Virus record (IMG/VR): IMGVR_UViG_3300023174_000033
Location: 248,001-312,000 of that record
Reading direction: 5' to 3' (one strand)
DNA: 64,000 nt
A program made the position numbers and the translations under genes. Below, piece by piece: positions 10,835 to 56,936 of the stretch; within the stretch, counting starts at the first letter, position 1, and the number at the start of each line of letters is the position of its first letter. The notes under the pieces were generated by a model. That model saw nothing but the letters and a program-made list of their open reading frames with translations, did not search any database and was not told where the DNA came from.

Positions 10835-11218
10835 ATGGCTTTTGATTTCAAGGATTTTTATGTAATGTACAAAGGTAATCCTTACTATGAGGGGGATAAA
10901 ATTGAGGAAGATAGTGTAATAAGAGTTATTATACAGAAATACTATAATTTATTATTCACCAATAAGGGGGATGTGCTCGGAGATCCTGAATTTGGAGCTA
11001 ATCTAGAAGAATTACTTTATGAAACAGGGTTAGACGATGTGTCCGTGAGGCAAGTCATAATTGACCAATTAGAGATATACATACCTGAAATATTTGGAAC
11101 TAGTTTTGATATAGGGGTCGTATTTGTTGAGGACCCATATAATTATCAAGAAATGATGTTTATCAATCTAACAATTAGTGACTTTGATATAATTACACAA
11201 GTAGGGAGGACTGGTTAA
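10835..11218 (+). CDS. Baseplate wedge protein (T4 gp25-like)
   Basis: LLFTNKGDVLGDPEFGANLEELLYE...IYIPE motif. Confidence 0.85.
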   Translation: MAFDFKDFYVMYKGNPYYEGDKIEEDSVIRVIIQKYYNLLFTNKGDVLGDPEFGANLEELLYETGLDDVSVRQVIIDQLEIYIPEIFGTSFDIGVVFVEDPYNYQEMMFINLTISDFDIITQVGRTG

Positions 11219-11826
11219 ATTGGACAGTGATTGGCAGACCAAATATACTTCCAGTTTCTTTTAATATTTATCCCCATTGATTCCATGAGTACATAAATAT
11301 CCTCAAGGCACTCATTATCAGCTCCCCCAACAATTGTAACATTTCTATTTTTTAAATTATTTAAAAGTTCCCAAAGTTTCTTTGGACACTCAAACCATTT
11401 GTGGTTATTACCGACAAAGACCAAATGAATCCCATCTTTTATTTTGAAAAAGTCACCAACTTTAATATCTCCCTTTTCTTCCTTACTTTTCAATAATTTA
11501 TAGGTTTCGTTCCCCATTTTATCTTTAAAAAAATCAACATCAACATCATACCTATATCTTTTCTCAATAATATCTTTTTGATTGGGGAATTGATAAAGAT
11601 CAGGGTGAATTGGGATTGTTGGATTATCTTTGTATAGATAATCATCTTCAACATTTTTCCCATCTACATGATTGTCCCAAATTTGATATACTTCTTTAAA
11701 AGTATTACAATATTTCTTTAATTCGTGTAAATACATTTCACTGAAAAATTTCTTGTAGGATTTCTGTGTGTCAACAATTACCAAAACTTCTTCTCCAAAG
11801 TTCTCGTAGATTTTTAAATACTTCAT
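11215..11826 (-). CDS. Isochorismatase/nicotinamidase-like cysteine hydrolase with N-terminal leader motif
   Basis: VLVIVDTQ (Asp), IIEK (Lys), IVGGADNECL (Cys) fit the D-K-C triad arrangement. Confidence 0.6.
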   Translation of the reverse strand: MKYLKIYENFGEEVLVIVDTQKSYKKFFSEMYLHELKKYCNTFKEVYQIWDNHVDGKNVEDDYLYKDNPTIPIHPDLYQFPNQKDIIEKRYRYDVDVDFFKDKMGNETYKLLKSKEEKGDIKVGDFFKIKDGIHLVFVGNNHKWFECPKKLWELLNNLKNRNVTIVGGADNECLEDIYVLMESMGINIKRNWKYIWSANHCPI

Positions 11827-11852
11827 ACAGTATATATTAGTAAGGTCAAAAA

Positions 11853-11878
11853 AAAAACACCGACGAATCGGTGTTTTT
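11853..11878 (-). terminator. Intrinsic terminator
   Basis: aaaaacaccga-cgaa-tcggtgttttt hairpin after the 184-aa ORF. Confidence 0.85.
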
Positions 11879-11897
11879 GATTTATTTTATTAAAATC

Positions 11898-12452
11898 TTA
11901 TTCAGGTAATTCTTCACCACCTTCTTCTTCTTCTTCTTCGGTGCCCTCTTCTTCAACTTCTTCAAATTCACTTTGACCCTGTGTTTGGCCCTGAGTTTGT
12001 GTCTGTCCCTCTTCCTGTGTCTCGGTTTGAACTTGTACCTGACCCTGTCCTTGTGTTTGTACCTGTCCTTGTGGTTGAGCTTCGGTTTGTACTTGAGTCT
12101 GGACTTGTCCTTGTGTTTGTGCTTGTGGCTCCATTTGACCTTGTCCTTGTGTTTGAGATTGTTCTTGTCCACCACCCACTAGAGCATTTGGCGAAAGTGT
12201 ATCAGCATCTAACCCAGTTTGTGCTACAAACTTTACAATTTCTTCAGCAATATCCATATCGCCGAAAAACTGCCTTAGGTTTTTGCCAGTATTATCCTTT
12301 ACTTTCTTTACGTAAGCATTGATTAATGACTGTGGAATGTCAATAGTAGTTTTAACTTTATAAATATCATTAACTTGGAAAACTGCTTCCATAATTATTT
12401 CCCCCCTTTTTTTGTCCTTTCTGAAGGATTCAAACTTTCTCAAATGATTCAT
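11898..12452 (-). CDS. Hypothetical protein with leader motif and Gln/Thr/Gly then Glu-rich tail
   Basis: Starts MNHLRKFESF; QTQGQ repeats; acidic C-terminus; own promoter and terminator. Confidence 0.75.
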   Translation of the reverse strand: MNHLRKFESFRKDKKRGEIIMEAVFQVNDIYKVKTTIDIPQSLINAYVKKVKDNTGKNLRQFFGDMDIAEEIVKFVAQTGLDADTLSPNALVGGGQEQSQTQGQGQMEPQAQTQGQVQTQVQTEAQPQGQVQTQGQGQVQVQTETQEEGQTQTQGQTQGQSEFEEVEEEGTEEEEEEGGEELPE

Positions 12453-12518
12453 GTTATCAAGAATATTTTTTATAATTAAAGTTATATATTATAATACAAA
12501 ACCCAATTTTTTATTTTT

Positions 12519-13022
12519 TCAATGTAGTGCTAAAATAATTGATAATACCAATGTCGTGACCAATAATCCACCAGTTCCCCACCAAGCCACGGCCTTTTCA
12601 AGCTTAAGATTATTTATTTGTTTATTATTGTTTGAGATTATTGTATCTTTTGAAGCAGATTGTTTTTCACAAAGAAATTTCAATCTTTCTTCTTCCTTTT
12701 TACTATCCAAGCAAGTATTTAATAAATTCAAGTTATTTGTACTTGAAGAGTCTGCTCTCTTCAAACTAACTCTATATGTGCCCAATGTCCTTTCATAGTC
12801 ATCAACCACAACAACCATTTTATTCATTGTGCAGTCGCAAGATATAGCCATAGTTTCAAAGAATGATTTCAATTGTAAATCATTTTTAATTCTTTTAAGT
12901 TGGGACATGGATATTGTTATACCAAGTGTATCTTTACCGTTTATGTAGTATTTTGGTAGTTTATCTTGTGAAAACACGAAATAAGGTAAAATTAAAAATA
13001 AAAGTATAAATAAACTTCTCAT
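12519..13022 (-). CDS. Exported coiled-coil protein with C-terminal transmembrane helix (candidate spanin partner)
   Basis: Signal peptide MRSLFILLFLILPYFVFS-Q; C-terminal GLLVTTLVLSIILAL. Confidence 0.55.
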   Translation of the reverse strand: MRSLFILLFLILPYFVFSQDKLPKYYINGKDTLGITISMSQLKRIKNDLQLKSFFETMAISCDCTMNKMVVVVDDYERTLGTYRVSLKRADSSSTNNLNLLNTCLDSKKEEERLKFLCEKQSASKDTIISNNNKQINNLKLEKAVAWWGTGGLLVTTLVLSIILALH

Positions 13023-13026
13023 CGGG

Positions 13027-13434
13027 TTAATATTTTTTAAAGAATTCTAAAGTTTCTTCATTTGTTGGAATTCTTTGATTTCTCTTCATTTCTTCAATTT
13101 TGTCTCTATCAATTTTCCATCTTTTTTTATAATTGTTCAACGTATCAATTGATATTTTTAATTTAGCTTCTTGAATTTTAATTTTTTCCCTATCTTTTTT
13201 TATCATACTATCCAATCTTAAACCAACTTTGTAAATGCTGTCATACCTCACCTCAAGTCTTTTTTTAATCAAATCAATTGAATCTTTTTGCTTTTCAAGA
13301 CTTTCAATTTTTGAAAGTAGTCTGGAATTATCCCTTTCTAATTTTGATGGATCTCCAAAAAAATTCTTCCAAACTAAATATATGAGTGAACAAATCAGTA
13401 TGGGAAATAAAATATATTTAAAAATATTTTCCAT
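13027..13434 (-). CDS. N-terminally membrane-anchored coiled-coil protein (i-spanin-like)
   Basis: Hydrophobic YILFPILICSLIYLVW followed by a long charged coiled coil. Confidence 0.55.
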   Translation of the reverse strand: MENIFKYILFPILICSLIYLVWKNFFGDPSKLERDNSRLLSKIESLEKQKDSIDLIKKRLEVRYDSIYKVGLRLDSMIKKDREKIKIQEAKLKISIDTLNNYKKRWKIDRDKIEEMKRNQRIPTNEETLEFFKKY

Positions 13435-13504
13435 TTTTGGTTTTTTTTTATATACCTTTGTATATATAAAAAATATATAATCTCATAAAAAATAAAAAAT
13501 AACG

Positions 13505-13786
13505 ATGTCCACGATTATTAAAGAACAACTAAGTACACAATTAGAGGAACTTTTGACTCAACCACATATGATCATTCTACATAATGATGATTACAATTCT
13601 TTTGATTTTGTAATCAACTCACTGATTGAAATCTGTGGACATGAATACGAACAGGCTTCTCAATGTGCCCATATCGTACATTTTACTGGTAAATGTGATA
13701 TTAAACGGGGTGACTTGGATTCATTGAAAAAAATGTATAATAAGTTGAAATCTCTTGGACTCTCCGTCACCTTGGAAATGATTTAA
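13505..13786 (+). CDS. clpS: ATP-dependent Clp protease adaptor ClpS
   Basis: IILHNDDYNSFDFVINSL...QASQCAHIVHFTGKCDIK signature. Confidence 0.9.
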   Translation: MSTIIKEQLSTQLEELLTQPHMIILHNDDYNSFDFVINSLIEICGHEYEQASQCAHIVHFTGKCDIKRGDLDSLKKMYNKLKSLGLSVTLEMI

Positions 13787-15930
13787 GATTTCCAAGGACT
13801 TTTGAATGTCTGATTTTCAACTATCCTAGCTGCCCTTCTCCTCCGATTTACTGACAATAAAGCGGAGTAGTCATTTCCTTCGGTATAATCTTTTCTATCT
13901 AAAATTTGATTATAATAAGATAATCTATGTCCCTCTAATTTAGTTCTCGCATAATCCTCAACCATTTCACGGAATTCGTATTTACTAAAAACACTTGACA
14001 TATTAACCAAAGTCATCACGGTGTCGTCGTGTCCGATATCAGCAGCATATCTGACATTTCCAGATGGGGTTATATGTTTAACAAATGTGGTGATTTCTCG
14101 TATATTATCTTCATTCGTAATCAAAATATTTTTTCTATCCATATTATCTTGATAATCTTTAACGAGCATATTCTTATTTTCACCAATTTTAAGTCCAATT
14201 TTTTCCTCTGGTGAGTCAACTCTGTGTTTATATCTGAAAAAAACATTTGACCCATAGTTATTATTACCTTCAAATAAACCTGGTAAATGAGCTAGAAATT
14301 CATTTCCATAGTTATTTAATTCCAATACAACTTTGAAATTTTCAGAGTTGAAATATTCAAATAATAAACAATAGAATACCTCTGCGAGTTGTTTTACCGA
14401 AACCAAATTATTTCTGTATACGGCAATTTGTTCTAAACAGAAAAAATCAGACAAATGTGTATAAGAATTTTTTTGCATCTCAACTAAATCCTCTGATTTT
14501 GGAACTATTTTGAAAACATTTATGATTGAATAGTCTTGTCCCAAACCTTCTGAAATATCAACCGACATTATTCCTTTGACAGTATTTCTATCAATCGGTG
14601 AAAAAACTGAATCATCATCAACCCATTTCAATTCATCATAGGGGAATTTTAATCTTCTGTCCAACTCCTCCAACTTTTCGTAAACATAATTTTTCTTATT
14701 TGAAAGTAATCCCTCAATTATATGTTCTGAAAGTAATGACCTTGTGGCATTGACAAACCTCAACCCATATTCTTGGTTGAAAGCGTCCTCACCACCGATA
14801 TCTTTGACCGCCTCCTCTTTCCAAGTAGTTACTTCTGCTACACTTTGTATTGGTATCTCTTCTCCACTTTCTTTTAATATCTTTATAGACTTTGCCTGAA
14901 TTTCACTGCAAGTTTCATTGTTATAAACACAGATAACATCTTTTACTATATCTGTATAAAATTTCATTTCAATTTTAGTGAATTTATTGAACTCATTATT
15001 TACTTGATCAAAAACACTTTCTTTTGTGAGTCCATGTTCATACATCTTGTGATTATTTAGTCGGTATAAAGTGACAAATCTTCCAGGCACTTGATACCAA
15101 TAAACCCTCATAGCTTTGTAGTTATTCTTTAATGGATCACCATCAGGCCTTTCCGCATCGGTTAAAAGTCTATGAAATAAATTCATCCCATTTGGTGTAG
15201 ACGTAATTACAATCTTGGAATTTTCCACCGCAGATACTACTGGAAATACCGCAGTATAGTATGGTTCAATTATGTTTGATGGTATGTGGGCAAATTCATC
15301 CAAATATAGAAAGTCAATCGTAAAACCAATTGCAGGTGTTTTACTTCTAGCGGCCGATTTTATTCTACAACCATTTTCAAATATTATGGTTCTTTGATTC
15401 CAGTTTTTCAAACCAGTTTTTAGAAAAAATGGAAGATTTTGATAAATTGCTTTTATCTTATCAATAATTTCAATAGTAGTACTAGCTATATTTGCTACAA
15501 TCATTATGTTTTTATCATTATTGAATGTGACATAATGTAACATCGCGATAGCTGCATTTATGGTTTTCCCTATCTGCCTTGACCCCATGAGTATTGAAAA
15601 TCTACTTGCGGTATATAAATCAAGTATCTTTTTCTGATAATCCCTTAATTTTATATTTTGTATTGAACCATCCTCTGTTTTGATTTTACAATATTTTTCG
15701 GCAAAGTAATGTATATCAAGTTTACATTTGATGTATTCTTGGATCTCATCTTGACTCATCATGAAAGTGATGCCAGACTTTCTCAACCCTACTTCACTTT
15801 GAAACCATGGGTTTTCAAATCTTTTGATTACAACACCATCATTTATCCTATCAGTAACATCTTCAATTAATGTGGAAGTGAATATGATTTTCCTTACTTC
15901 TTCCTCCTTTTTTGAGGCCATAGGGCTCAT
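13783..15930 (-). CDS. terL: Terminase large subunit (T4 gp17-like)
   Basis: LRDYQ, Walker A SRQIGKT, Walker B LYLDEFA, ITSTPNG, nuclease VDISEGLGQDYS and HDDTVM. Confidence 0.95.
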   Translation of the reverse strand: MSPMASKKEEEVRKIIFTSTLIEDVTDRINDGVVIKRFENPWFQSEVGLRKSGITFMMSQDEIQEYIKCKLDIHYFAEKYCKIKTEDGSIQNIKLRDYQKKILDLYTASRFSILMGSRQIGKTINAAIAMLHYVTFNNDKNIMIVANIASTTIEIIDKIKAIYQNLPFFLKTGLKNWNQRTIIFENGCRIKSAARSKTPAIGFTIDFLYLDEFAHIPSNIIEPYYTAVFPVVSAVENSKIVITSTPNGMNLFHRLLTDAERPDGDPLKNNYKAMRVYWYQVPGRFVTLYRLNNHKMYEHGLTKESVFDQVNNEFNKFTKIEMKFYTDIVKDVICVYNNETCSEIQAKSIKILKESGEEIPIQSVAEVTTWKEEAVKDIGGEDAFNQEYGLRFVNATRSLLSEHIIEGLLSNKKNYVYEKLEELDRRLKFPYDELKWVDDDSVFSPIDRNTVKGIMSVDISEGLGQDYSIINVFKIVPKSEDLVEMQKNSYTHLSDFFCLEQIAVYRNNLVSVKQLAEVFYCLLFEYFNSENFKVVLELNNYGNEFLAHLPGLFEGNNNYGSNVFFRYKHRVDSPEEKIGLKIGENKNMLVKDYQDNMDRKNILITNEDNIREITTFVKHITPSGNVRYAADIGHDDTVMTLVNMSSVFSKYEFREMVEDYARTKLEGHRLSYYNQILDRKDYTEGNDYSALLSVNRRRRAARIVENQTFKSPWKS

Positions 15931-15967
15931 TATTTTATGATATATATGGCAAACATTCCGGTCTCAT

Positions 15968-17411: not shown

Positions 17412-17431
17412 AGTAATATTATATATTAAAT

Positions 17432-17460
17432 AAAAAAACCCATCGTAAAGATGGGTTTTT
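17432..17460 (-). terminator. Intrinsic terminator
   Basis: aaaaacccatc-gtaaa-gatgggttttt hairpin after the 150-aa ORF. Confidence 0.8.
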
Positions 17461-17463
17461 AAT

Positions 17464-17916: not shown

Positions 17917-17939
17917 AAAATTTAATGATTTTTTATAAT

Positions 17940-18395: not shown

Positions 18396-21134
18396 ATGAA
18401 ATACCTACAAAGAAGAGACGATTTTTTACAACTAAAAAATATTGACATTGAAAATGAAGATACTATAAAGTTATTCAAAAGTTCCGAAATGATACGTGAA
18501 ACCTTTGAAAATGACATAACTTGGGGTGGTTCGCTAGTAGGTAGACTTATAAATTCAGTAATCAGATATAGTAAGATTTTAGTTCAAGCTCAAAGAATAA
18601 AGAGTATAATTCCTCAAATTGAAAGATGTTTGAATGAACTATTAGCAATTGCCGTTTTTGATGAAGACCAAAGAAAGAAGATTGCCTTGGTCACTGTACA
18701 ATTCCTTTTAGAAGAAATAATAAAAGTGGTGAAATCAAATTTATCAGTTCAAGTAAAAATTACACAATTGGCTGGTGATGAGAATGGTGAAGGTGGTTTA
18801 ATTGATAATGTAATCAAAAAATTAGAGGAAAGTGTTGATGAGACTGATTTTCCAGATAAAAATGATGTTATCGCTAAACTTAAAAAGTTTAAAGAAGAAT
18901 TATTAAAATTAAGAGGTGATGAAACTCCCGAGGAAGAGGAGGAATCCGATGATGAAGAGCCAAGTTCAAATTTTAAAGAAGAAATAACTGAATTTTTAAA
19001 ATCAATTTTGGATTTATTTAATTTTTTTAAAAAATCACCAGAAGGAGAGAAAAAGACTAAACTTACTTGGAAAGGTAAAGAGGTTATAATAGTTAGTAAG
19101 GGGAATAAAAAATTAGGAGCCGGAGATGATCAAACTTGGAATACTACAGATGATGAATTTGACGGCAATCCACCAAAAAAAATAGTTCCTCCTGGTAGCA
19201 TACAAGTTATAGTTAAGAATCCAGTAACCAATAAATTTGATAAAGATTCAGAAATAGCTATTGTAAAACCAACAGAATTGAAGAAAGAATCCTTATTGGT
19301 TGAAAATTTGACACCAGAGGTTGAAAAACAAGTTCAAAATGCTAAAAGTAAAATTCAAAAAGCTTTTAAATTTTCCGAGATGGGTAAATATGAAAGTTTA
19401 TTCACTAAATTATTAAATGATTGTGAATCTGGTAATGAGGTGAGTATTGGATACGCAAAAGAAATTATGAAACAAGTCTTTAAAAATGAAATTACCGAAG
19501 GTAAACCGATTTCGTTTGAGGAACTCATAAAAGAAGCCGCTGAACCATTTTTTAAGACAGAGTACAAAGTTCTTCCAAAAGTGATTTCATTGTTGGGTAG
19601 GGTTTTGATGTCATTAAAAGATAGTATTGAATTTACTGGAAATTTTGGAGATTTGAGTGGTCACATAAAATCGTTTGTAGAGGGATATACAAAAATAAAA
19701 GAAACTTTAAAATCCGAATCCGAGGAAAAAGAGAATGTAGAGGTAAGTGAAGAAGGTGCTGGTGAAACGACTGCCGGTGAAAAATCAATTACAACAACAC
19801 AATCTCAAACTGAAAAGTTTAACTATAAACCCATATTTGAAAAAGATGAGCCGGGTAAAATTGGTGATGCTTTGGATAAGGTCATGGAAGCTTGGAGAAA
19901 TAATATCACGGTTGAAGAAGAAAAGAAATGGTCGGTAGATAAGACCTTAGCTAAAAAACTTGAGAATGATGGTAAAAAAGCAGAGAATAGTAAATTGACG
20001 ATTGACATAAGTAAGAAGGAAAACTTTGATTACATAGTTGAAATAGCTGATTTATTTGGAAAAGCTTATAAAATGTATGCTACGAATTGGATACCCTCTG
20101 GTAGACCAGGAGGTATTATTTCTTTGAGTACTTTAAGAGAATACAAATATATTGGTGATGAAACCACCTCAAGATCGGATTGGGGTAGAGATAAAGGAGA
20201 TGGTAATCCAGGTGAAGGTCCTTGGGCGGCTTTGAAAGTTTATAAGAAATTTGAGGATGGGATTATGGGATTATTGAAAAATAATCAATATAGAAAAATT
20301 CTTGCTAATTCTAGATTTAAGAATAGTGGTCCAAACCAAGCAGAAGGTTCAGGTAAAACACTTTTCAAATTCATGAATAATATGTTAAGTGGTATCAAAG
20401 GAGACTATGATAAAAATAGACACGAACTTTTTGCTGAATATTTTGGACAAGAGGGATCGGACCGGGCAGAATTTAAACCTGTTGGTGGTGGTGGTAATAA
20501 TGATATCTTACCAGGGAATCAAGGTGAAAAGGGATCTGTGTCCTTCTTGAAGGGAACCACCGGTATAACTTTAGCCGATGTGAGAGAAAGTGGGCAGTAT
20601 AATAAATCATTTGGGTATGTTGAAGGTGTTATAAATGGCAAAACCGATCAAAAAATGATAATATATTTTAATTCTGTTGTGAAAATTGATAAGAAAATGT
20701 TTCTATTTTGTAGGGTCCACCTGAGTAAGAATAATAAACAATCTTTGGTTTCTTCATACTTGAAAAAAACTATGGAAGATAAAAAACTCAAATTGGACAA
20801 GTCTTTGCCGGAAAATGTCAATGAATTAGTTTATTTTTTACCAATTGAAATGGATGGATCAAAGAAATATTTCAGAAAAGGAGTAGAATTAAATTTGAAA
20901 TGCATCAACATTAAAAAATTAGAAACAGATGAACCAATAACTTTAAAAATCAAACCTACAAAAGATATTTTTATACTTGGTTATGTTGATGAAAACAAAG
21001 ATGGAAAACAAACTCAAAAAGTTTTGAGTCTTGATGGAGAACCTTTCAGAAATCCAAGTGGCGACTTAAAAATAAACCTCGCTCAAAAATTCAAAGACAA
21101 GGAGAGTTTGAGGAAAAAATTTGGAATGCAATAA
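18396..21134 (+). CDS. Large hypothetical protein, probable internal head protein
   Basis: 912-aa ORF; MKYL leader, several [LI]xE sites beside acidic linkers; late promoter at 18366-18373. Confidence 0.7.
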   Translation: MKYLQRRDDFLQLKNIDIENEDTIKLFKSSEMIRETFENDITWGGSLVGRLINSVIRYSKILVQAQRIKSIIPQIERCLNELLAIAVFDEDQRKKIALVTVQFLLEEIIKVVKSNLSVQVKITQLAGDENGEGGLIDNVIKKLEESVDETDFPDKNDVIAKLKKFKEELLKLRGDETPEEEEESDDEEPSSNFKEEITEFLKSILDLFNFFKKSPEGEKKTKLTWKGKEVIIVSKGNKKLGAGDDQTWNTTDDEFDGNPPKKIVPPGSIQVIVKNPVTNKFDKDSEIAIVKPTELKKESLLVENLTPEVEKQVQNAKSKIQKAFKFSEMGKYESLFTKLLNDCESGNEVSIGYAKEIMKQVFKNEITEGKPISFEELIKEAAEPFFKTEYKVLPKVISLLGRVLMSLKDSIEFTGNFGDLSGHIKSFVEGYTKIKETLKSESEEKENVEVSEEGAGETTAGEKSITTTQSQTEKFNYKPIFEKDEPGKIGDALDKVMEAWRNNITVEEEKKWSVDKTLAKKLENDGKKAENSKLTIDISKKENFDYIVEIADLFGKAYKMYATNWIPSGRPGGIISLSTLREYKYIGDETTSRSDWGRDKGDGNPGEGPWAALKVYKKFEDGIMGLLKNNQYRKILANSRFKNSGPNQAEGSGKTLFKFMNNMLSGIKGDYDKNRHELFAEYFGQEGSDRAEFKPVGGGGNNDILPGNQGEKGSVSFLKGTTGITLADVRESGQYNKSFGYVEGVINGKTDQKMIIYFNSVVKIDKKMFLFCRVHLSKNNKQSLVSSYLKKTMEDKKLKLDKSLPENVNELVYFLPIEMDGSKKYFRKGVELNLKCINIKKLETDEPITLKIKPTKDIFILGYVDENKDGKQTQKVLSLDGEPFRNPSGDLKINLAQKFKDKESLRKKFGMQ

Positions 21135-21135
21135 A

Positions 21136-21693
21136 ATGTTACTTAAATATTCAGAATTTTTGAGAGAGAATGTAGAGGTTTATCAAACAGATGATCCAAG
21201 CCTAGCTTCAAGAAAGAATTTATTGAACGATTTGGAAAAACAATCCAAAGAATTTTTACAAAAAAGAGTTGAATTAGATAACATCTATTTAACTTATAAG
21301 GACGAGGGTGACCTCATTAATAAATTATCAGCCAGAGGATTTATCAAGAAAACTGGTAATAAAAAAAATATAGAATTTGAGAATCCCATACTTTCAATTT
21401 ATAGTGGTGCTAGTCAAAAAACCAGAAACTTGAAAGATATAGAAAAATCTGTTGAGGAATTGAAAGGAAAATTAAAGGAAAAAAATGATTATCTTCAGAA
21501 AAATCCAAACTCAAAAGAATCGGTGGGTGGTGAAATTGAAACTCTTAATAAAGAACTTGAGGAAAAGAACAAGCAAGTAGAAAATATTTCAAAACAAATA
21601 GTTGAGATTCAACGAGTTTCCAATCAAAGGTTAAAGGAAATCACCAAGAGTTTTAAGGACACGAACAAACAAGTTAGGAGTGATTTGAAATGA
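21136..21693 (+). CDS. Coiled-coil protein with leader motif; probable start ATG 21136
   Basis: MLLKYSEFLRENV starts 1 nt after the upstream stop. Confidence 0.7.
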   Translation: MLLKYSEFLRENVEVYQTDDPSLASRKNLLNDLEKQSKEFLQKRVELDNIYLTYKDEGDLINKLSARGFIKKTGNKKNIEFENPILSIYSGASQKTRNLKDIEKSVEELKGKLKEKNDYLQKNPNSKESVGGEIETLNKELEEKNKQVENISKQIVEIQRVSNQRLKEITKSFKDTNKQVRSDLK

Positions 21694-30347: not shown

Positions 30348-30378
30348 AAAAACCCTCAAGAAATTGAGGGTTTTTTTT
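30348..30378. terminator. Bidirectional intrinsic terminator
   Basis: Same hairpin as 26049-26078, between convergent genes. Confidence 0.9.
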
Positions 30379-30637
30379 ATAGAAACATATTTAAAAGTTT
30401 ATCAAGGTTAGTTTTATTGAAATCTGATAAGGGTTCTTTACCACCCGATTTCAAATAAAGATTATAAAGATCAAGAAACTGATCTTCGTTATAAATATTT
30501 CCATCCATCCCAAGTATAACCGATGTATCATCTGTACTCAATGTAATTTGATTTTTCTGTTGTGGATAGTTTGGCCCCATATCACGACCAACTAATTCCC
30601 ACCCACTAATAGATTCTTTGAACGATTTTAGCTTCAT
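30377..30637 (-). CDS. Hypothetical protein with leader motif
   Basis: MKLKSFKES; ATGA overlap with the upstream ORF. Confidence 0.65.
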   Translation of the reverse strand: MKLKSFKESISGWELVGRDMGPNYPQQKNQITLSTDDTSVILGMDGNIYNEDQFLDLYNLYLKSGGKEPLSDFNKTNLDKLLNMFL

Positions 30638-41977: not shown

Positions 41978-41980
41978 TTT

Positions 41981-42008
41981 AAAACCCCTCTTTTGAGGGG
42001 TTTTTTTT
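41981..42008. terminator. Bidirectional intrinsic terminator
   Basis: aaaacccctc-tttt-gaggggtttttttt between convergent genes. Confidence 0.85.
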
Positions 42009-48102: not shown

Positions 48103-48681
48103 ATGAGGTACATAAATTTGTTTAATAAATTCCAACCAATTAGTGAAAATCTTAAATATCATGTAGATAATAATCTACCAGTATTAGAAAATGTTTTTAG
48201 ACCTGGTTCAAATTCTTTCTTTGAATTAATTAAGGAAGCTAGAAATCTTTTTGACTCAAAAGAGATTGAATTAGTTGGAATTGACAAAATACTTTTTGAA
48301 ACTACGGATTTAGGCAAATTTGCAGAGTTTGAAGGTGAAATTGTACCACTTGACCTACCGATTGAAGAAACCGAAGAATTATACGAGGCTGAATATCATG
48401 GTAAAAAAGTTCCTATCGGCAAACCTATGAGAAGTTCTGGTCCGAAGAAATATAAAGTTTATGTGAAAAATCCTAAAACTGGAAATGTAAAAGTGGTAAA
48501 TTTTGGTGATGCTAAAGGTGGATTGAGTGCTAAAGTATCTGATCCAAAAGCTAGAAAATCTTTTGCAGCCAGACATCAGTGCCATTTGAAAAAAGATAAG
48601 ACCAAACCAGGTTACTGGGCTTGTAGGGCTAACAGATATGCTAATCTTTGGGGTGGCAAAACTTATCCTGGATATTGGTAA
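48103..48681 (+). CDS. Conserved viral protein with basic C-terminal domain (RKSFAARHQC...PGYWAC); probable start ATG 48103
   Basis: MRYINLFNKF start follows GATATATA at 48066-48073; track start overlaps the divergent gene. Confidence 0.75.
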   Translation: MRYINLFNKFQPISENLKYHVDNNLPVLENVFRPGSNSFFELIKEARNLFDSKEIELVGIDKILFETTDLGKFAEFEGEIVPLDLPIEETEELYEAEYHGKKVPIGKPMRSSGPKKYKVYVKNPKTGNVKVVNFGDAKGGLSAKVSDPKARKSFAARHQCHLKKDKTKPGYWACRANRYANLWGGKTYPGYW

Positions 48682-51700: not shown

Positions 51701-54700
51701 TGAATCAATTCGGTGTGTCATCTGGTGCAAACAATCAAGGTAGTTATGTAAATCAGATAGGGTACGCAGTTGGAGATGGTAATAAGTCCTCATTTGTTAA
51801 TTCCATAGGTTATTTAACTGGTCAAGCAAATGGAGGTAGTTTTTCTAATTTTATGGGAGCTTGGGCGGGATGGCAAAATAGTGGGCACTCTGTCAACGCA
51901 ATCGGTAATAGTGCTTCAAAGTCAAACACCGGTGATTATGTAAATGCTATTGGAGATAATGCTGGGTTTTCCAATTTAGGAAACCATGTAAATTCTATGG
52001 GTCGAGATTCAGCGAGGGAAAACAAATCTGATTTTGTTGATGCAATCGGAACAGAGGCAGCAAAATTAAACTCAGGAACTTATGGTATTTTTATCGGATA
52101 TCAATCTGGATTATCAAATAAAGGTTCATATGTTGTGAGTTTAGGATATCAATCAGGTGATAATAATAGTGGTGAAGGTTCGGTAAGTATAGGTCGAAGA
52201 GCTGGTCAAAACTCTTCTGGTGATTATATGAATGCGATTGGATATCTAGCTGGTTTTGGTTCAAGTGGAGTCAGAAATAATTTCATAGGTTACGATACTG
52301 GTGAAAATAACACTGGCACAAGAGTAAATGCCATAGGTGAAAGTGCTGCCCTTTCCAATGATGGTAATTATATAAATGCTATTGGATTTGAAGCTGCTTG
52401 GGATAATGCCAGCGATTATGTAGATGCAATTGGGTATCAGGCGGCTTACCAAAACACAAACGCTTCAAATTATATAGTAGCAATTGGGCGTTCGAGTGGA
52501 TACAGAAATAGTGGATCATACAACAACTTCGTAGGAAATGAAAGTGGATTTGACAATGAGGGAAGTTTCAATATTGGTTTGGGGTTTCGATCTGGCTACT
52601 CTGTAACAGCATCATACGTCGTTTCCTTGGGATTTGAGAGCGGTCAAAATTCAATAGCTGGAGTAAATGTAAATATCGGAAGAGAAGCTGGTAAACAAAG
52701 TCTTGGCGCTGGTAGTAATTTTATCGGTGATATGGCTGGTAAAAATAATAAAAGTCAATACGTTATAGCGATAGGGGAATCAGCAGCAGAAGGAAATTAT
52801 GGAACTTTTGGCATTTTTCTTGGACGTTTCAGTGGTCAAAACAATCAAGGTGCGTCCAACATTGGATTGGGTAATAATACTTTCGTTAATAGTCTCGCCA
52901 CTCGTTCTGTTGGCATTGGTAGTGGTGGAGCTCTTCAGAATTCCTACGGTAGTTTCCTTGTCGCAATTGGAGATAGTAGTGGTGGATTCAATAAATCTGA
53001 TAGAACAATATCTATTGGTTACCTTGCTGGATATTTACAAGCTGGTACACAATCAATTGCTATAGGTAATGAAAGTGGACAAAGCAACATTGGTATTCGG
53101 GTTATATCAATAGGAAGTAGAGCTGCTTATGGAAATACTGGTAGTGAAGTTATATCTATAGGTTCAACTGCGGGTTACTATAATTCTGGTGAGAGAGGTA
53201 TCTATATAGGGATTGAATCCGGTAGAGAACATACTGGAGATAACTCAATCGCGATTGGTGATGGTTCATTGAGTAGAGAGACTATAGCTCCATTTAGAAC
53301 CACATCATCAACATACTCAATTGCCATAGGTTCAGATGCTGGTAAGAGAAGTAGTTTATCAAATAGTGTGGTGGTCGGTAAATCCGCTGGTCTTGGATCC
53401 TCTGGTGTTCAAATTATAGGCATTGGTGATTCAGCTCAATCAGGTTCAAGTGGTGCAAATAGTATAGGTATAGGTCAGTCATCACTTTCATCTAATTCAG
53501 GTACTTGGTCAATTGGATTGGGATATAGGGCAGGACAACTGAATACATCAGAATACTTGATTGCCATGGGATATGATGCTGGTAATCAAAATCAGGGAGA
53601 TAATTCAATTTTGCTTGGATATCAATCAGGTCTAGGTAATAAAAGTGATTCTACGATAAGTTTTGGGTTTCAATCGGGTTATCTAAACGAAGGAACTTAT
53701 TCCGTTATGGTTGGTGAAAGAGCTGGTGCGAATAATCAAGGATTTAGTTTAAACTCTGTTGGATGGTATGCAGGTAATGGTAATGATGGTGATTATGTTG
53801 TTGGTATAGGATATCAATCAGCAAGAGAGAATAAAGGAGATGATTTAGTTTCACTCGGACAAGAGGCAGGTCAGTTCAATAAATCATCAAATGTTGTATC
53901 TATTGGTCAGAGAAGTGGTCGTACAAATACCGGAACTTGGTCTAATTTTATAGGTTTCAAATCTGGAGAATTAAATACCGGAGCTTACACAAACGCATTT
54001 GGTTCTAGTGCTTCTTTCACAAATAAAGGTCAATATGTAAATGCGATTGGTTTTGAAGCTGGTGCATTCAATGAAGGGACATATGGTGATTTCCTCGGAT
54101 ATAGAGCTGGTTATCAAAACTTTGGAGAAAATTATGTTATTGGTATAGGTGTGCAAGCTGCTATGTCAAATTCAGCTTCAAACATAATTGCAATTGGTTT
54201 AAATGCTTTAAGAAGTAATTTAGGTGGAAGTGATGAAACCATCGGTATAGGTAATCAGTCAGGTAATCAAAATAAGGGGGTAAAAAATGTTTTCATAGGT
54301 AGTAACGCCGGACAATTACAAAAGGGTGACCAAAATATTGCAATTGGTGCTAACTCAGGACAACAAAGTTTTGGTACAAATTCAGTTTATATTGGTTTAT
54401 TTGCTGGATACCAACAAACCGGAGAAAGTGCTATTTTGATTGGTGAAAATGCTGGAAATGCTGGTACTGGACATGAAAATATAAGTATTGGTAAAAACGT
54501 TGGTGGAGTTAGAGGCTCAAATAATATTTCAATCGGGGAAGAAGCTGGTTCACAAATTAGAGCGACATTCAGTATACAAATTGGTTATAGAGCTGGAACA
54601 AGAAACTCTGGTTCGGATGTTGTAATTATTGGTAATAATGCAGGTGTAGGCAATACTGGCAGTAGTAATAATATAATAGGAGCGAGTGCAGGTCAAGGGA

Positions 54701-56130
54701 ATTTCGGTTCATTTGCAAATATAATGGGAGTTGATTCAGCTCTGAACTCTTTGAATATAAGTTATGGTAATGCTTTTGGATATGGTGCGGCAAGAAATGC
54801 TATAGGATTTGGTTCCAACTTTATTGGCCAAGAAGCTGGTTCTACTGCTGCTGCGGTTGCTCAATATAGTAATTATATCGGAGCATGGGCAGGTGGATCT
54901 AATGGTGGAGATAGAGTGAACTCGATAGGATTTTTTGCAGGCCATAACACCAAGGGATATTATTCTAATTATATCGGATGGGATGCTGGTAAAGATACAA
55001 ATATGCGTCACTCAAATGCTATAGGTTATAGGGCAGCAAGTGAAGTCGGTAAAAATCAAACCTCGAGCCCTAATCCTTTTAACAGTGCATTGAACCAATT
55101 TATAAATGCAATCGGAGTTGAATCTTTATTTGCAGGAACTGGAAGTCACGTTAACGCAATAGGTACTAGTGCTTCTTTCAGAGGAGCAGGGGAGTTTATC
55201 AATAGTATTGGTTTTGAAGCAGGCGCTATTACTAACGGTTCTTACAGTAACTACATAGGATTTAAAGCTGGATTTCAAAGTACAGGAGACTATAACGACT
55301 TTATTGGATATCAATCTGGATTTAGAAATAAAGGTAACAAAAACCTGGCAATTGGTACCGAGGCCTTATCGTCGTTCAACGGATTGTCGACAATAGGAAT
55401 CGGAGAGTTATCTGGTCAGTATTCCACTGGTAGTTCAAATATATTTATAGGAGGATTTCAGACCGGAAAATATTCGGAAGGAAATAGTAATATTTATATT
55501 GGGGGCAGAACGGGTGAAGATACAAATGGTGACGCAAATGTATCCTTAGGTATAAATAGTCTTCAGGGGGGTACTGCATCAACCACAATTGTGATTGGTG
55601 CTAATAGTGGGGGTAGTATGAGGACTTTGGATGGAATCGCTATAGGTAGTAATGCACTTTCAGGCCATAATGGGAATAATACTATCTCGATAGGTAAAAG
55701 TTCTGGTAATAATTCCTTAGCGAATAACCTGATTATGATTGGGGAGAACGCTGGTGAGCGTAGTAGAGGAACTCATAGTATACACATTGGTCAGAATTCT
55801 GGAGGTAAAAGTGGTGGGTTTCAGATTGGTCAGTACAATGTTGGTATAGGTAGGGAAAGTCTTTATGGACTCACCGGATCTTACTTAGTTGCTATTGGTG
55901 ATCAAGCTGGATACGAAAATTCCGCAGATCACGTTATTGCTTTGGGAGCAACTGCTGGATATAGAAACACAAAGAGTAACCAATTCATAATTAGTAATAG
56001 TAATATGCCAGTATACACCGATAAAGCTACAGCTGATGCCGCTATAACAGTAGCGAACGGATTCAACAGTGGTAATACTTACTTATATTGGAACACCGCA
56101 ACTGCTGATATAGGAGCTAAAAGATTGTAA
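48751..56130 (+). CDS. Long beta-solenoid fibre/adhesin-like protein (2459 aa, about 16-aa NxGxxVxAIGxxA repeats)
   Basis: Continuous Gly/Asn/Ser repeats similar to trimeric adhesin-head and fibre repeats; own late promoter at 48719-48726. Confidence 0.8.
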   Translation: MKIDKPSINRITDLRSINDVNITIGNTSSLSFPTSEANHIIIGASAGQENYGINVVGLGLESVKNNDGSSVYAIGRKSAFGNSQDHVVAIGDLTANENLGINVNAIGEWAGASNSGDNVNAFGKRAAYGNTGSNVNAFGELAAQGNDGNDLNAIGYYAGNQNTGDYVNAVGWIAGRKNTGDNVDAFGNYAAESNKGSRVVGIGNAAAYQNTGSTIVAVGYLSAFGNTGSDGVYIGNNAGSKNIGDGVNAIGNSSGLANSGNQLNSIGNDSARNNTGNNVVAIGDRAAYQNEGSETYVFGLDAGRENKGNYVASIGTEAARENTGSNVQAFGRLAAKGNTGSDVVSIGYAAGIRNVGDVINAIGLESALDNSGNYVNSIGQRAGDTNTGDFVNQFGRYAGQNNKGSYANQIGDSAGKYNTGMSVNQIGLNAGLGNTGSYVVQIGEGAGSGNTTNLMVQIGLEVGTNNTGERSNQIGAFAGGNNSGSFANQIGFGSGANNTGEQATQIGNAAGSGNSGLAVNQIGSNAGQSNEGDYVNQIGVGTGQSNKGNNANQIGSGAGSGNEGNDVNQIGTNAGGNNTGDSVNFIGKNSGASNTGTYVEAIGENSAFSNTGVHVIALGYDAANDNSGNNVIAIGGTAARENTGSDVIGIGENAAYLNSGASDVIAIGRDAAKQNTGQYVYAFGTIAARENTGTNVVAIGGPVLVNNSGNQVVGLGISSLEDNQGDYVIGIGDITGNSNTGDYLIAIGREAGTLNTGIHQNAFGNRSLYNATSNYSNAIGYQSGEQSSGSHKNMIGYEAGLGSGGDRQDVMGYNAFYEASGSDIVAIGAYALFLGTASRLVAIGASAGMYNIANDGIFIGGEAGSFNKGTESIQIGKLAGSRNTGSNVVQIGIETGTGNTGSNNLQIGGYAGQENISSGSIQIGLFAGYQNTGNHSNQLGYQAGYQNIGSRAIQLGYAAAQQNSGDYAVQIGDNVGGLNTGDYVNQFGVSSGANNQGSYVNQIGYAVGDGNKSSFVNSIGYLTGQANGGSFSNFMGAWAGWQNSGHSVNAIGNSASKSNTGDYVNAIGDNAGFSNLGNHVNSMGRDSARENKSDFVDAIGTEAAKLNSGTYGIFIGYQSGLSNKGSYVVSLGYQSGDNNSGEGSVSIGRRAGQNSSGDYMNAIGYLAGFGSSGVRNNFIGYDTGENNTGTRVNAIGESAALSNDGNYINAIGFEAAWDNASDYVDAIGYQAAYQNTNASNYIVAIGRSSGYRNSGSYNNFVGNESGFDNEGSFNIGLGFRSGYSVTASYVVSLGFESGQNSIAGVNVNIGREAGKQSLGAGSNFIGDMAGKNNKSQYVIAIGESAAEGNYGTFGIFLGRFSGQNNQGASNIGLGNNTFVNSLATRSVGIGSGGALQNSYGSFLVAIGDSSGGFNKSDRTISIGYLAGYLQAGTQSIAIGNESGQSNIGIRVISIGSRAAYGNTGSEVISIGSTAGYYNSGERGIYIGIESGREHTGDNSIAIGDGSLSRETIAPFRTTSSTYSIAIGSDAGKRSSLSNSVVVGKSAGLGSSGVQIIGIGDSAQSGSSGANSIGIGQSSLSSNSGTWSIGLGYRAGQLNTSEYLIAMGYDAGNQNQGDNSILLGYQSGLGNKSDSTISFGFQSGYLNEGTYSVMVGERAGANNQGFSLNSVGWYAGNGNDGDYVVGIGYQSARENKGDDLVSLGQEAGQFNKSSNVVSIGQRSGRTNTGTWSNFIGFKSGELNTGAYTNAFGSSASFTNKGQYVNAIGFEAGAFNEGTYGDFLGYRAGYQNFGENYVIGIGVQAAMSNSASNIIAIGLNALRSNLGGSDETIGIGNQSGNQNKGVKNVFIGSNAGQLQKGDQNIAIGANSGQQSFGTNSVYIGLFAGYQQTGESAILIGENAGNAGTGHENISIGKNVGGVRGSNNISIGEEAGSQIRATFSIQIGYRAGTRNSGSDVVIIGNNAGVGNTGSSNNIIGASAGQGNFGSFANIMGVDSALNSLNISYGNAFGYGAARNAIGFGSNFIGQEAGSTAAAVAQYSNYIGAWAGGSNGGDRVNSIGFFAGHNTKGYYSNYIGWDAGKDTNMRHSNAIGYRAASEVGKNQTSSPNPFNSALNQFINAIGVESLFAGTGSHVNAIGTSASFRGAGEFINSIGFEAGAITNGSYSNYIGFKAGFQSTGDYNDFIGYQSGFRNKGNKNLAIGTEALSSFNGLSTIGIGELSGQYSTGSSNIFIGGFQTGKYSEGNSNIYIGGRTGEDTNGDANVSLGINSLQGGTASTTIVIGANSGGSMRTLDGIAIGSNALSGHNGNNTISIGKSSGNNSLANNLIMIGENAGERSRGTHSIHIGQNSGGKSGGFQIGQYNVGIGRESLYGLTGSYLVAIGDQAGYENSADHVIALGATAGYRNTKSNQFIISNSNMPVYTDKATADAAITVANGFNSGNTYLYWNTATADIGAKRL

Positions 56131-56138
56131 TTTTGACT

Positions 56139-56405
56139 ATGGAATTACCTTTCAACGAAGAAGAAATTTCAAAGGCTGTCTATTTAAGGACATTTTATGA
56201 AAATGTTGAGTCAGGTGATTTGACTTGGCACAGAGATAGAGAAGACAGATATATTGAGCCAACCCATGAGACAAATTGGGCATTCCAAATAGATAACGAA
56301 TTGCCACAAAATATAGATAAAAAAATATTTATACCTAAAGGTGTTTATCACAGACTTATAAAAGGTAAAGGAGATTTGATATTAAAAATTGAAAAATTAA
56401 ATTAA
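56139..56405 (+). CDS. Small cupin-like protein
   Basis: WHRDRED...IFIPKGVYHRL cupin motifs; ATG at 56139. Confidence 0.75.
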   Translation: MELPFNEEEISKAVYLRTFYENVESGDLTWHRDREDRYIEPTHETNWAFQIDNELPQNIDKKIFIPKGVYHRLIKGKGDLILKIEKLN

Positions 56406-56415
56406 TATATAATTT

Positions 56416-56634
56416 ATGAATCACTTATTATTATTTGAAGACTTTCAAGAATATCTAATTGTTGAAAAAAATGTACCTAACAATCCATCTTTATGGGCAT
56501 CTTGCAAAGCTTGGGCAAAAAATACTTATGATGTTTATCCATCCGCTTATGCTAATGGAGCAGCTGCAAAAAGGTACAAATCCAAAGGTGGAACTTGGAG
56601 AAAATCAAAAATTAGAAAAAAGAAAAAGAAATAA
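56416..56634 (+). CDS. Small basic protein (YPSAYAN...YKSKGGTW family) with leader motif
   Basis: MNHLLLFEDFQEYLIVE leader followed by a Lys-rich conserved core. Confidence 0.75.
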   Translation: MNHLLLFEDFQEYLIVEKNVPNNPSLWASCKAWAKNTYDVYPSAYANGAAAKRYKSKGGTWRKSKIRKKKKK

Positions 56635-56936
56635 TGGAACATTTACTCCCATTTGAAGACTTCATCAATGAAGAAAAATCATATAAGGGTTCTCATGGTG
56701 GACTGGATAAATGGTTCAAAGAGAAGTGGGTAGATATTTCGAAAACTAATAAAGATGGATCACACCCGCCTTGTGGCAGGTCAGATACAAGTAAAGGTGG
56801 GTATCCTAAATGTAGAAAAGTAAGAGTAGCCGCTAAAATGTCTAAAAAACAAAAAAAGGCATCAGTTTCTAGAAAAAGAAGAGCGGAAAAAGAGGGTTCA
56901 AAGGGAAGTGGTAGGAAACCAAACTACGCGAATTAA
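56634..56936 (+). CDS. Small basic protein (GLDKWFKEKWVD...PCGR...YPKCR family) with leader motif
   Basis: MEHLLPFEDFINEE leader; TAATG coupling to the previous gene. Confidence 0.75.
   Translation: MEHLLPFEDFINEEKSYKGSHGGLDKWFKEKWVDISKTNKDGSHPPCGRSDTSKGGYPKCRKVRVAAKMSKKQKKASVSRKRRAEKEGSKGSGRKPNYAN

Follow-up and report, generated by a model that had tools for sequence, protein, structure and literature searches.

A ten-residue N-terminal leader resembling the phage T4 capsid targeting sequence on about one in ten proteins of a 465-kb huge phage of Bacteroidota

We analysed a 64,000-nucleotide stretch (the window; positions 248,001 to 312,000 of IMG/VR record IMGVR_UViG_3300023174_000033) together with the whole 464,605-bp genome from which it derives. 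Unless stated otherwise coordinates refer to the window, which carries part of a T4-like head module and several genes for otherwise unrelated proteins with a similar N-terminus. The features are as follows.

1..1937 (-), gp21-family prohead protease (690 aa) fused to a scaffold-like acidic C-terminal part; the gene starts at 1937 and runs 136 bases past the left edge of the window (genome 247865-249937), between the portal and major capsid genes
661..1077 (-), about 12 tandem 14-aa repeats (YSEYIAENLDKNIA) inside the protease gene
2974..4674 (-), T4 gp20-like portal protein
5946..6284 (-), gp55-like late sigma factor
11215..11826 (-), leader MKYLKIYENF on a 203-aa isochorismatase/nicotinamidase-like body
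11830..11837 (-), ATATATA promoter-like element a few bases upstream of the ATG of this leader gene
11898..12452 (-), leader MNHLRKFESF on a 184-aa acidic protein of unknown function; an ATATATA element lies at 12482-12489
18396..21134 (+), 912-aa ORF with a leader-like but divergent N-terminus (MKYLQRRDDF), of uncertain membership; an ATATATA element lies 22 nt upstream
21136..21693 (+), T4-like leader MLLKYSEFLRE on a 185-aa protein between the 912-aa ORF and the sheath-like genes
30377..30637 (-), 86-aa ORF starting MKLKSFKES, borderline and not counted as a member
48103..48681 (+), degenerate leader MRYINLFNKF on a 192-aa conserved domain
56128..56135 (+), Bacteroidota-type TAnnTTTG early promoter element 3 nt upstream of a non-leader gene (56139)
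56416..56634 (+), leader MNHLLLFEDF on a 72-aa basic protein; an ATATATA element lies at 56405-56412
56634..56936 (+), leader that continues into a T4-like site (MEHLLPFEDFINEE) on a 100-aa basic protein; its start overlaps the stop of the previous leader gene

The preliminary description, made from the window alone, listed eight unrelated ORFs with a similar leader (starting at 11826, 12452, 18396, 21136, 30637, 48103, 56416 and 56634), and all eight N-termini read as given there. Its observation holds, and the set of such genes is larger than it had reported. Specifically, about 50 of about 530 ORFs in the genome start with M-K-[YH]-[LI]-K-x-[FYW]-E-x-F. A PSSM built on the N-termini splits the proteome in two, with 51 ORFs scoring at least 13.7 bits and the rest at most 11.4 bits; position 4 is L/I and position 7 is F/Y/W in 51/51. 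Five of the eight examples are canonical members, i.e. 11826(-) (33.6 bits), 12452(-) (28.9 bits), 48103 (20.2 bits), 56416 (30.8 bits) and 56634 (27.0 bits). Of the others, 21136 belongs to a second, T4-like class (type B, as opposed to type A for the main class), while 30637 scores below the threshold and 18396 scores 3.3, with R at position 7; an ORF in the related genome LR756502, its orthologue, starts MRYLKQREEF, passes the threshold and also has R at this position. As the preliminary description stated for replication enzymes and tail genes, no T4-like replication gene or large structural ORF is among the leader genes.

The motif is almost never internal. In the six-frame translation of the whole genome there are 54 hits of at least 14 bits, of which 49 lie exactly at the first ATG of a called ORF and three of the other five lie one to five codons from a start. 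Without M1-K2 the core motif occurs truly internally only twice in the whole proteome. A comparison with shuffled N-termini, proposed beforehand as a check and run here in a non-circular form, agrees in that 63 ORFs have at least 5 N-terminal neighbours against 0-5 in 20 shuffles. Moreover, synonymous codons follow genome usage, so selection acts on the peptide.

After residue 14 the 50 bodies fall into 40 BLAST clusters. The possibility that the proteins constitute one large diverged paralogue family, with the leader as its best-conserved segment, is supported only by some sub-families (six proteins in one cluster, three in another, and three pairs) and appears very unlikely, since distinct folds and families occur among the bodies (NUDIX, NFACT-R, OmpA-like, DUF5872 and isochorismatase-like). 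Pfam and PHROGs name few of them. The 72-aa protein at 56416 weakly matches the first half of DUF5872 (E 0.006, profile positions 1-50) and the 100-aa protein at 56634 its second half (E 0.0002, profile positions 42-114). For the isochorismatase/nicotinamidase-like protein at 11215-11826 the AlphaFold2 model has a mean pLDDT of 83, with residues 1-9 below 50 and without secondary structure, and in this one model the leader is disordered and outside the predicted fold; the best PDB matches are nicotinamidase and isochorismatase but are weak (E 0.015, TM 0.35-0.44). This family has 882 homologues, all 120 examined keep the leader, and D19 and C173 are invariant. The LR756502 orthologue of 12452 keeps the leader as MKHIRQFESY. 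Homologues of 48103 on metagenomic viral contigs start MKYLKLFESF or MKHLELFESF, whereas the homologue in the cultured Flavobacterium phage immuto lacks the leader and in Melnitz the domain is the C-terminal part of a 650-aa protein. Leader proteins are soluble: 2/50 have a hydrophobic segment, none of them at the N-terminus, against 48/458 others. The leader has alternating charged and aromatic residues, and thus lacks the hydrophobic core of about 10-15 residues after a basic N-terminus of Sec or lipoprotein signal peptides; true lipoprotein-like signals occur on other ORFs.

Two promoter-like elements separate the genes. Host-type early elements (TAnnTTTG) precede 0/50 leader genes against 73/480 others (p = 8e-4), while ATATATA elements precede 32/50 against 144/480 (p = 5e-6), and the 17 leader genes without their own element are operon-internal. 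LR756502 replicates the split, with 0/120 against 51/847 for the early element and 70/120 against 187/847 for ATATATA. A simple count of the late-promoter sequence TATAAATA was not informative (4/50 against 16/480). The ATATATA element also precedes the major capsid, portal, sheath-like and giant structural ORFs, and all leader genes are in ATATATA-driven units shared with structural genes. We first took this class to be strictly late, but a PHROG summary showed that it also drives ribonucleotide reductase, topoisomerase II, PhoH and methyltransferase genes, and it therefore marks "not early" rather than "late". The gp55-like sigma factor (phrog_234, 7.8e-8) is a candidate reader of the ATATATA promoters, a link that is our inference.

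These elements bear on whether the leader helps translation start, or early elongation, on mRNAs lacking a Shine-Dalgarno sequence or a 5' leader in a Bacteroidota host. Upstream regions show no Shine-Dalgarno sequence, in 20 of the 33 leader genes with an ATATATA element it ends fewer than 12 nt from the ATG, so that many mRNAs would be leaderless or nearly so, and codons 2 and 5 are mostly AAA. However, about 29 early genes with TAnnTTTG fewer than 6 nt from the ATG are equally leaderless and none has the leader peptide, operon-internal leader genes keep it, the strongly expressed structural genes lack it, and conservation is at the amino-acid level and reaches residue 10-13. We consider this explanation improbable.

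Leader genes turn over much faster than other genes: only 7/50 leader proteins have a homologue in the closest relative, LR756502, against 222/458 others (p = 2e-6). This matches the published description of T4 internal proteins as a diverse set that shares only the capsid targeting sequence (CTS) (PMC3012670). The shared start might alternatively be a functionless by-product of gene shuffling, with new genes inserted by recombination at a conserved promoter-plus-first-codons module, like the promoter-terminator cassettes (PeSLs) of T4-type phages (PMC2839356, PMC4122927), in which a conserved regulatory element flanks hypervariable genes and may help them shuffle. Leader genes are the most variable part of the genome, most carry the same ATATATA element just upstream, and in one 183-kb contig (G001) about 25 copies share nearly identical leader DNA. 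PeSLs are, however, non-coding DNA elements conserved as promoter and stem-loop, whereas here the promoter element is conserved but the leader codons vary synonymously as in the rest of the genome. Furthermore, all 120 orthologues of the isochorismatase-like family examined keep the peptide pattern while residues 2, 3, 6 and 9 vary, 17 leader genes have no promoter of their own, and positions 4 and 7 never vary in chemical type. We therefore regard this possibility as unlikely.

The head module is T4-like, with a portal (PF07230, 7e-59), a gp23-like major capsid protein (PF07068, 1.9e-25) and the gp21-family protease, which matches phrog_207 (head maturation protease, 1e-29), Peptidase_S77 (weakly, 1e-3), T4 gp21 by blastp (2e-4) and cyanophage S-CRM01 gp21 (3e-13). 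Each 14-residue repeat of the protease (DNA period 42) holds a T4-type [IL]-A-E site and the T4 targeting-sequence core. The array is conserved in the relatives LR756502, LR756501, LR756504 and G005, the repeat region is matched by LR745206 and G009 (G005 and G009 being our labels for two further sequences), and 11-14 Y-x-x-Y-[ILV]-A-E repeats are present in every relative read residue by residue except LR756500, where the array is degenerate.

Related Mahaphage-clade genomes carry 33 to about 120 leader genes each, and each genome has its own consensus across dozens of unrelated proteins, which implies one shared, co-evolving recognition partner. We had expected the leader to be absent from LR756501 and LR756500, because the strict DNA pattern gave 0 hits, but both have their own variants, and the idea that intact protease repeats go together with presence of the leader therefore failed. 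LR756500 has 33 leader genes with consensus M-K-[YF]-I-K-E-Y-E-E-F-[LIV]-N-E-[ASN], of which 21 keep [ILVM]11-x-E13, joining the type A half to the T4 site in one peptide; the leader there runs on into Y-E-E-F-[LIV]-x-E, the extended T4 gp21 cleavage pattern. The leader consensus does not visibly co-vary with the protease repeat, which is almost the same in all relatives.

The T4-type CTS is a short peptide (10-19 residues) at the extreme N-terminus that ends in a gp21 cleavage site, [LI]-x-E, followed by a small residue. In T4, residues 4 and 7 of the CTS carry targeting and residues 8 and 10 carry processing (PMC9026906); T4 has Y4 and F7, and here these positions are L/I and aromatic. The T4 sequences examined show one extended pattern, hydrophobic-x-x-hydrophobic-[IL]-x-E, seen in IPII/III (MKTYQEFIAE), the gp23 site FGSFLTE at residue 65 and gp24 INELLRE. 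Type B leaders (M-x(1-6)-[FYW]-x-x-[FYW]-[ILVM]-x-E) fit it at 13 N-termini (1.5 expected by chance), comprising about nine mostly larger, conserved proteins, including 21136, and four type A leaders that run on into the site, and their orthologues in LR756502 and LR756501 keep it. The N-terminus at 21136 fits hydrophobic-x-x-hydrophobic-[ILV]-x-E, as do T4 YQEFIAE and the protease repeat YSEYIAE. In contrast, of the type A leaders in this genome (M-K-[YH]-L-K-x-F-E-x-F, about 50 small, fast-changing proteins) 27/50 have any [LIVM]-x-E ending by residue 14, 20 of them at E8, and only 4 have the canonical F-[ILV]-x-E. The [LIF]-x-E that the preliminary description placed after the leader is only about two-fold enriched, and [LIV]-x-E in residues 9-20 is only weakly so (15/50 against 93/458).

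Together these data lead us to favour, with moderate confidence and from sequence alone, a clade-specific and greatly expanded form of the T4 CTS. In this view a short, free, disordered N-terminal peptide, with Met-Lys and hydrophobic residues spaced three apart as its key features, would dock newly made soluble proteins onto the prohead core. The likely docking site would be the gp21-like protease-scaffold protein, whose repeats have the same Y-x-E-Y-I-A-E pattern. The shell would then close around the cargo, the protease would cut after Glu where a site is present, and the proteins would stay in the head and enter the host with the DNA. Type B would be a near-copy of the T4 CTS and cleavage sites, while type A would keep the targeting half and in most copies have lost the canonical cleavage half, so that many type A cargoes may be loaded uncleaved or cut at E8. 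The motif, its N-terminal exclusivity, selection at the peptide level, the unrelated bodies, the head-gene set, the protease repeats, the promoter classes and the turnover follow from the sequences analysed, whereas binding to the core, packaging, cleavage and injection are inferred. The proposal of the preliminary description, that the phage uses a portable address tag to package a broad set of proteins into the head for injection, well beyond the few internal proteins of T4, is thus supported in part. The sequence-level tests fit such a tag, but the resemblance to T4 rests on about 10 residues, 50 to 120 cargo species would be unprecedented, and some bodies look like ordinary cytoplasmic enzymes (NUDIX, a HAD/polynucleotide-kinase-like protein and the isochorismatase-like protein). 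No cultured phage with the tag or the repeat-bearing protease was found, all carriers being uncultured metagenomic phages.

The leader might instead be a shared recognition tag for a partner other than the prohead, e.g. a phage or host chaperone, a protease that times degradation (an N-terminal degron) or a localisation factor. A genome-specific consensus on unrelated proteins shows only that there is a common reader, most type A leaders here lack a canonical prohead-protease site, several bodies are metabolic enzymes that would work in the cytoplasm, and the promoter class is not strictly late. This alternative, which we consider unlikely but the strongest of the rivals, does not explain the match to the T4 targeting determinants at positions 4 and 7, why the leader continues into a gp21-type site in LR756500, or why the same pattern is repeated 12 times in the prohead protease, and no candidate alternative reader was identified.

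Compared with the CTS of T4 internal proteins IPI, IPII, IPIII and Alt, the leaders are likewise short N-terminal tags that start M-K, have hydrophobic or aromatic residues at positions 4 and 7, and sit on otherwise unrelated, fast-evolving proteins, and the type B leaders, the LR756500 leaders and the protease repeats reproduce [FY]-x-x-[FY]-[IL]-x-E followed by A, S or N. They differ in that there are 50 to about 120 tagged genes per genome against a handful in T4, in that the main consensus (MK[YH]LKxFExF) is three residues longer before the second aromatic and mostly lacks the [IL]-x-E end, in that the bodies include enzymes, and in that the targeting-sequence-like unit is repeated in tandem inside the protease, which is not known to us from T4. 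The phiKZ-like giant phages (phiKZ, 201phi2-1, SPN3US) have a gp21-related prohead protease, about 50 head proteins, a large mass of ejected proteins, and N-terminal propeptides thought to target proteins into the prohead (PMC5694885); these propeptides are mostly longer than 100 residues, share no common sequence and are processed at a different motif, while the tag here is 10-13 residues with a strong consensus. In phage P1 the Dar (defence against restriction) proteins are built into the head during assembly and injected with the DNA (PMC12810830, PMC9024508). Dar loading depends on an ordered chain of specific Dar proteins and is not known to use one portable consensus tag. In encapsulins a short portable peptide directs unrelated enzymes into an HK97-fold shell, but the peptide is usually C-terminal, the shell has no portal, protease or DNA, and nothing is injected. 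Literature searches, in an incomplete library, found no report of this leader or of the protease repeats.

If the tag does load the capsid, it would help explain what huge phages do with hundreds of small, unknown, rapidly changing genes, which would form an injected first-strike arsenal present in the host cell before any phage gene is expressed. It would also mark candidate anti-defence proteins by sequence alone in uncultured phages, provide a short portable packaging tag and a candidate docking array for engineering, and extend a mechanism studied mainly in T4-like coliphages across the Mahaphage clade of Bacteroidota phages. In its furthest form, which is possible but in our judgement less likely than not, the largest known phages would load about a tenth of their proteome, 50 to 120 different fast-turning-over soluble proteins including NAD- and nucleotide-handling enzymes and possibly an ADP-ribosyltransferase-like protein, into the capsid and inject them with the DNA, loading being through docking of the 10-13-residue tag onto the tandem tag-like repeats of the protease-scaffold, i.e. 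a programmable multi-effector delivery system far beyond the few internal proteins of T4. The ADP-ribosyltransferase lead, for the 476-aa leader protein at genome 33458-34888, rests only on weak Atlas scores of 0.76-0.79. Even if the reader of the tag is something else, a genome-specific N-terminal tag on 10% of the proteome is a clear, testable handle on huge-phage biology.

Finally, two sequences appeared to carry leader genes without T4-like head genes. In the contig G001, with its about 25 leader genes, no head genes were found, and it may be a fragment. The IMG/VR record G003, called 100% complete and without a T4 portal, has hits with the same sequences as those of LR756504 and is probably part of that genome.

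The 464,605-bp viral contig has a G+C content of approximately 32%, and the following head and replication proteins are encoded within the window (bases 248001-312000) or, for the last one, next to it:

2974-4674, minus strand, a T4 gp20-like portal (PF07230, 7e-59)
13783-15930, minus strand, a T4-type large terminase
a gp4-like head-closure protein
5946-6284, minus strand, a gp55-like late sigma factor
a gp44-like clamp loader
just left of the window, a gp23-like major capsid protein

T4-like replication genes are scattered over the genome. The nearest relatives by portal identity are LR756502 (642 kb, 81%), LR745206 (635 kb, 77%), LR756504 (636 kb, 56%), LR756501 (735 kb, 51%), LR756500 (462 kb, 37%) and the Lak phages (31%). 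The largest of these were placed in the Mahaphage clade with predicted Bacteroidetes hosts (PMC7162821), and the promoters that we found (see below) agree with that host.

The observation made in the preliminary description, i.e., that unrelated proteins start with a similar leader, was confirmed, and all eight N-termini that it named are present. We called 530 non-overlapping ORFs and built a position matrix on their N-termini; 51 ORFs score at least 13.7 bits while the rest score at most 11.4. The consensus is M-K-[YH]-[LI]-K-x-[FYW]-E-x-F, where position 4 is L or I in 51/51 and position 7 is aromatic in 51/51. Of the eight examples five are canonical, window 21136 belongs to a second class (type B, see below), and windows 18396 and 30637 are borderline.

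Several controls show that the motif is not a chance pattern. In the six-frame translation, 49 of 54 hits sit exactly on the first ATG of a called ORF and most of the others lie a few codons from a start, and without M1-K2 the core matches only two truly internal places in the proteome. In a test that does not use the trained matrix, 63 ORFs have at least five N-terminal neighbours, compared to 0-5 in shuffles. Moreover, synonymous codons at the conserved residues follow genome-wide usage, and matched DNA in relatives varies at third positions; hence, selection acts on the peptide.

After residue 14 the 50 proteins form 40 BLAST clusters, and the few bodies that can be named differ from one another: NUDIX, NFACT-R, OmpA-like, a polynucleotide-kinase-family match and DUF5872. 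For DUF5872, two adjacent and overlapping small ORFs (window 56416-56936) match the first and second halves of the domain and each has its own leader; they could be a split gene or two diverged partial paralogues. A 476-aa basic leader protein (genome 33458-34888, minus strand; our locus L002, 13461-14888) has only ADP-ribosyltransferase families (DarT/PARP, Arr, Tox-ART) among its nearest Atlas clusters, but the scores are 0.76-0.79 and the Pfam search gave no match, and this is a lead only; if true, it would parallel the packaged Alt enzyme of T4. The leader proteins are soluble, with 2/50 having a hydrophobic segment. For the family of window 11215-11826, all 120 listed homologues keep the leader, and the AlphaFold2 model (pLDDT 83) leaves residues 1-9 disordered ahead of the first strand. 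The predicted fold weakly resembles nicotinamidase and isochorismatase, which gives weak support to the preliminary assignment as a cysteine hydrolase.

The strict DNA pattern gave 11, 13 and 18 hits in LR756502, LR745206 and LR756504, respectively, and none for the reversed control pattern; it also hits more than 118 AT-rich IMG/VR stretches, almost always at ORF starts. Full scans showed that LR756502 has about 120 leader genes among 967 ORFs, with variants MKHLKxYKIFES and MKHLKKYNES. LR756501 has 33 in 400 kb with consensus M-[IV]-[KT]-[KN]-[FY]-x-x-[FY]-[EIV]-[NK]-E, for example MIKTFDEFINES, and many of its leader proteins (loci L151-L170) share a DPYGEE(x)W motif soon after the leader, suggesting a large leader-tagged paralogue family. 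LR756500 has 33 in 400 kb with consensus M-K-[YF]-I-K-E-Y-E-[ED]-F-[LIV]-N-E-[ASN]. Thus, each genome has its own consensus across dozens of unrelated proteins, which points to one shared reader that co-evolves with the tag.

Among the IMG/VR records, G001 (182,728 bp; locus L036) has about 25 leader genes, most with nearly identical leader DNA (MKYLKLFENF followed by a shared NQSEIDEIC-like segment); this is a recently expanded paralogue family, and no portal, capsid or protease gene was found on the contig. The record G003 (347,857 bp; locus L044) is listed as 100% complete with inverted terminal repeats, but its 13 leader-pattern hits have the same sequences as those of the 636-kb LR756504. 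It is therefore probably a partial or folded assembly of that phage, and the completeness estimates for these huge phages look unreliable.

Two cultured comparators with gp21-like proteases have no dominant leader: Flavobacterium phage immuto (160 kb) has roughly 4-13 T4-like N-termini and Melnitz (141 kb) has two, which is the scale seen in T4. That the tag is portable is shown by the body of window 48103, which occurs with the leader on metagenomic contigs, without it in immuto, and as a C-terminal domain in Melnitz.

The T4 sequences that we read are IPII/III MKTYQEFIAE, IPI MKTFKEFTST, the gp23 maturation site FGSFLTE ending at residue 65, gp24 MAKINELLRE and gp22 MLKEQLIAE. Together they give an extended pattern, hydrophobic-x-x-hydrophobic-[IL]-x-E. 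Published mutagenesis places capsid targeting at residues 4 and 7 of the capsid targeting sequence (CTS) and processing at residues 8 and 10, and a change at residue 10 blocks processing but not targeting (PMC9026906). The T4 internal proteins are described as a diverse defence set that shares only the CTS (PMC3012670).

Three findings tie the present leaders to this system. First, 13 N-termini in this genome fit M-x(1-6)-[FYW]-x-x-[FYW]-[ILVM]-x-E, while 1.5 are expected by chance; we refer to these as type B, and examples are MRFQKFYEFIAEK and window 21136. Most are larger proteins, and their orthologues in LR756502 and LR756501 keep the same kind of N-terminus. One type B leader protein outside the window (MRILNFKNFLVES; genome 58901-60070, minus strand) contains GGAVRDF, which by visual inspection resembles the motif of tRNA nucleotidyltransferase (CCA-adding) enzymes. 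Second, the LR756500 leader is the leader that dominates this genome (type A) continued into exactly this site; F7 and F10 of type A therefore correspond to Y4 and F7 of T4. Third, the 690-aa protein between the portal and capsid genes is a gp21-family protease, and its residues from about 255 to 435 are about 12 tandem 14-residue repeats of YSEYIAENLDKNIA (DNA period 42 at window 661-1077). Each repeat holds an [IL]-A-E site and the T4 CTS core. Arrays of 11-14 such repeats are seen in LR756502, LR756501, LR756504 and the relative G005, the repeat region also matches in LR745206 and the relative G009, and the array is degenerate in LR756500. While the motif, its variants and the repeats are observed in the sequences, their role is inferred: in our interpretation the array would be a scaffold-like segment that the protease chops up, and cargo leaders would imitate one repeat and so join the core.

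Two upstream elements dominate the genome. The first, TTTG...TAnnTTTG with TTTG about 20 nt upstream, typically ends 4 nt before the ATG (for example window 56128-56135, upstream of 56139-56405). It matches the Bacteroidota housekeeping promoter, so the corresponding mRNAs should be early, leaderless and read by the host polymerase; it also supports a Bacteroidota host independently of phylogeny. It precedes 73/480 non-leader genes and 0/50 leader genes (p = 8e-4). The second, [AT]ATATATA, precedes the capsid, portal, sheath-like and giant structural genes, usually 20-28 nt from the ATG, and 32/50 leader genes compared to 144/480 others (p = 5e-6). It is also contained in the near-identical 50-nt upstream regions of two tandem giant paralogues (window 21815-26029 and 26183-30325; 1404 and 1380 aa), the first of which weakly matches a tail-sheath C-terminal domain (E 0.004). 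The 17 leader genes without their own element overlap or abut an upstream gene on the same strand, and 13 of those upstream genes are themselves leader genes. The split is repeated in LR756502, with 0/120 against 51/847 for the first element and 70/120 against 187/847 for the second. However, the ATATATA class also includes ribonucleotide reductase, topoisomerase II, PhoH and methyltransferase genes, and it therefore marks phage-directed, non-early transcription rather than strictly late genes. With respect to turnover, only 7/50 leader proteins have a homologue in LR756502, compared to 222/458 of the others and 131/335 of the others no longer than 300 aa (p = 2e-6 and 4e-4, respectively).

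The suggestion in the preliminary description that the leader is a capsid-targeting tag is partly supported: it passes every sequence-level test that we could devise, including N-terminal enrichment and absence from early genes, which had been set beforehand as conditions that could refute it. On present evidence, which comes from sequence and not from virions, we consider this reading somewhat more likely than not for type A, and we are more confident for type B. For type A in this genome, only about half of the leaders have any [LIVM]-x-E by residue 14, mostly L/I-F-E at positions 6-8, and only four have the canonical form; several bodies look like cytoplasmic enzymes, and the similarity to T4 spans about ten residues. 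Alternatively, the leader might be a tag for another partner, a by-product of gene shuffling, a translation aid or the conserved part of a paralogue family. Each of these fails at least one test, although a tag for another partner cannot be excluded. No report of this leader or of the protease repeat array was found in the literature that could be searched. In our view the T4 type of system is what is already known, and its proposed, greatly expanded form is what is new here.

Within the window, an ORF with homing-endonuclease-like PHROG matches (2474-2878) sits between the prohead protease and portal genes. Giant ORFs of 3083, 1999 and 2459 aa are present at 31150-40401, 42007-48006 and 48751-56130, respectively, and the two on the plus strand lie in stretches of 35-42% G+C with strong positive GC skew, compared to about 30% in most of the window.
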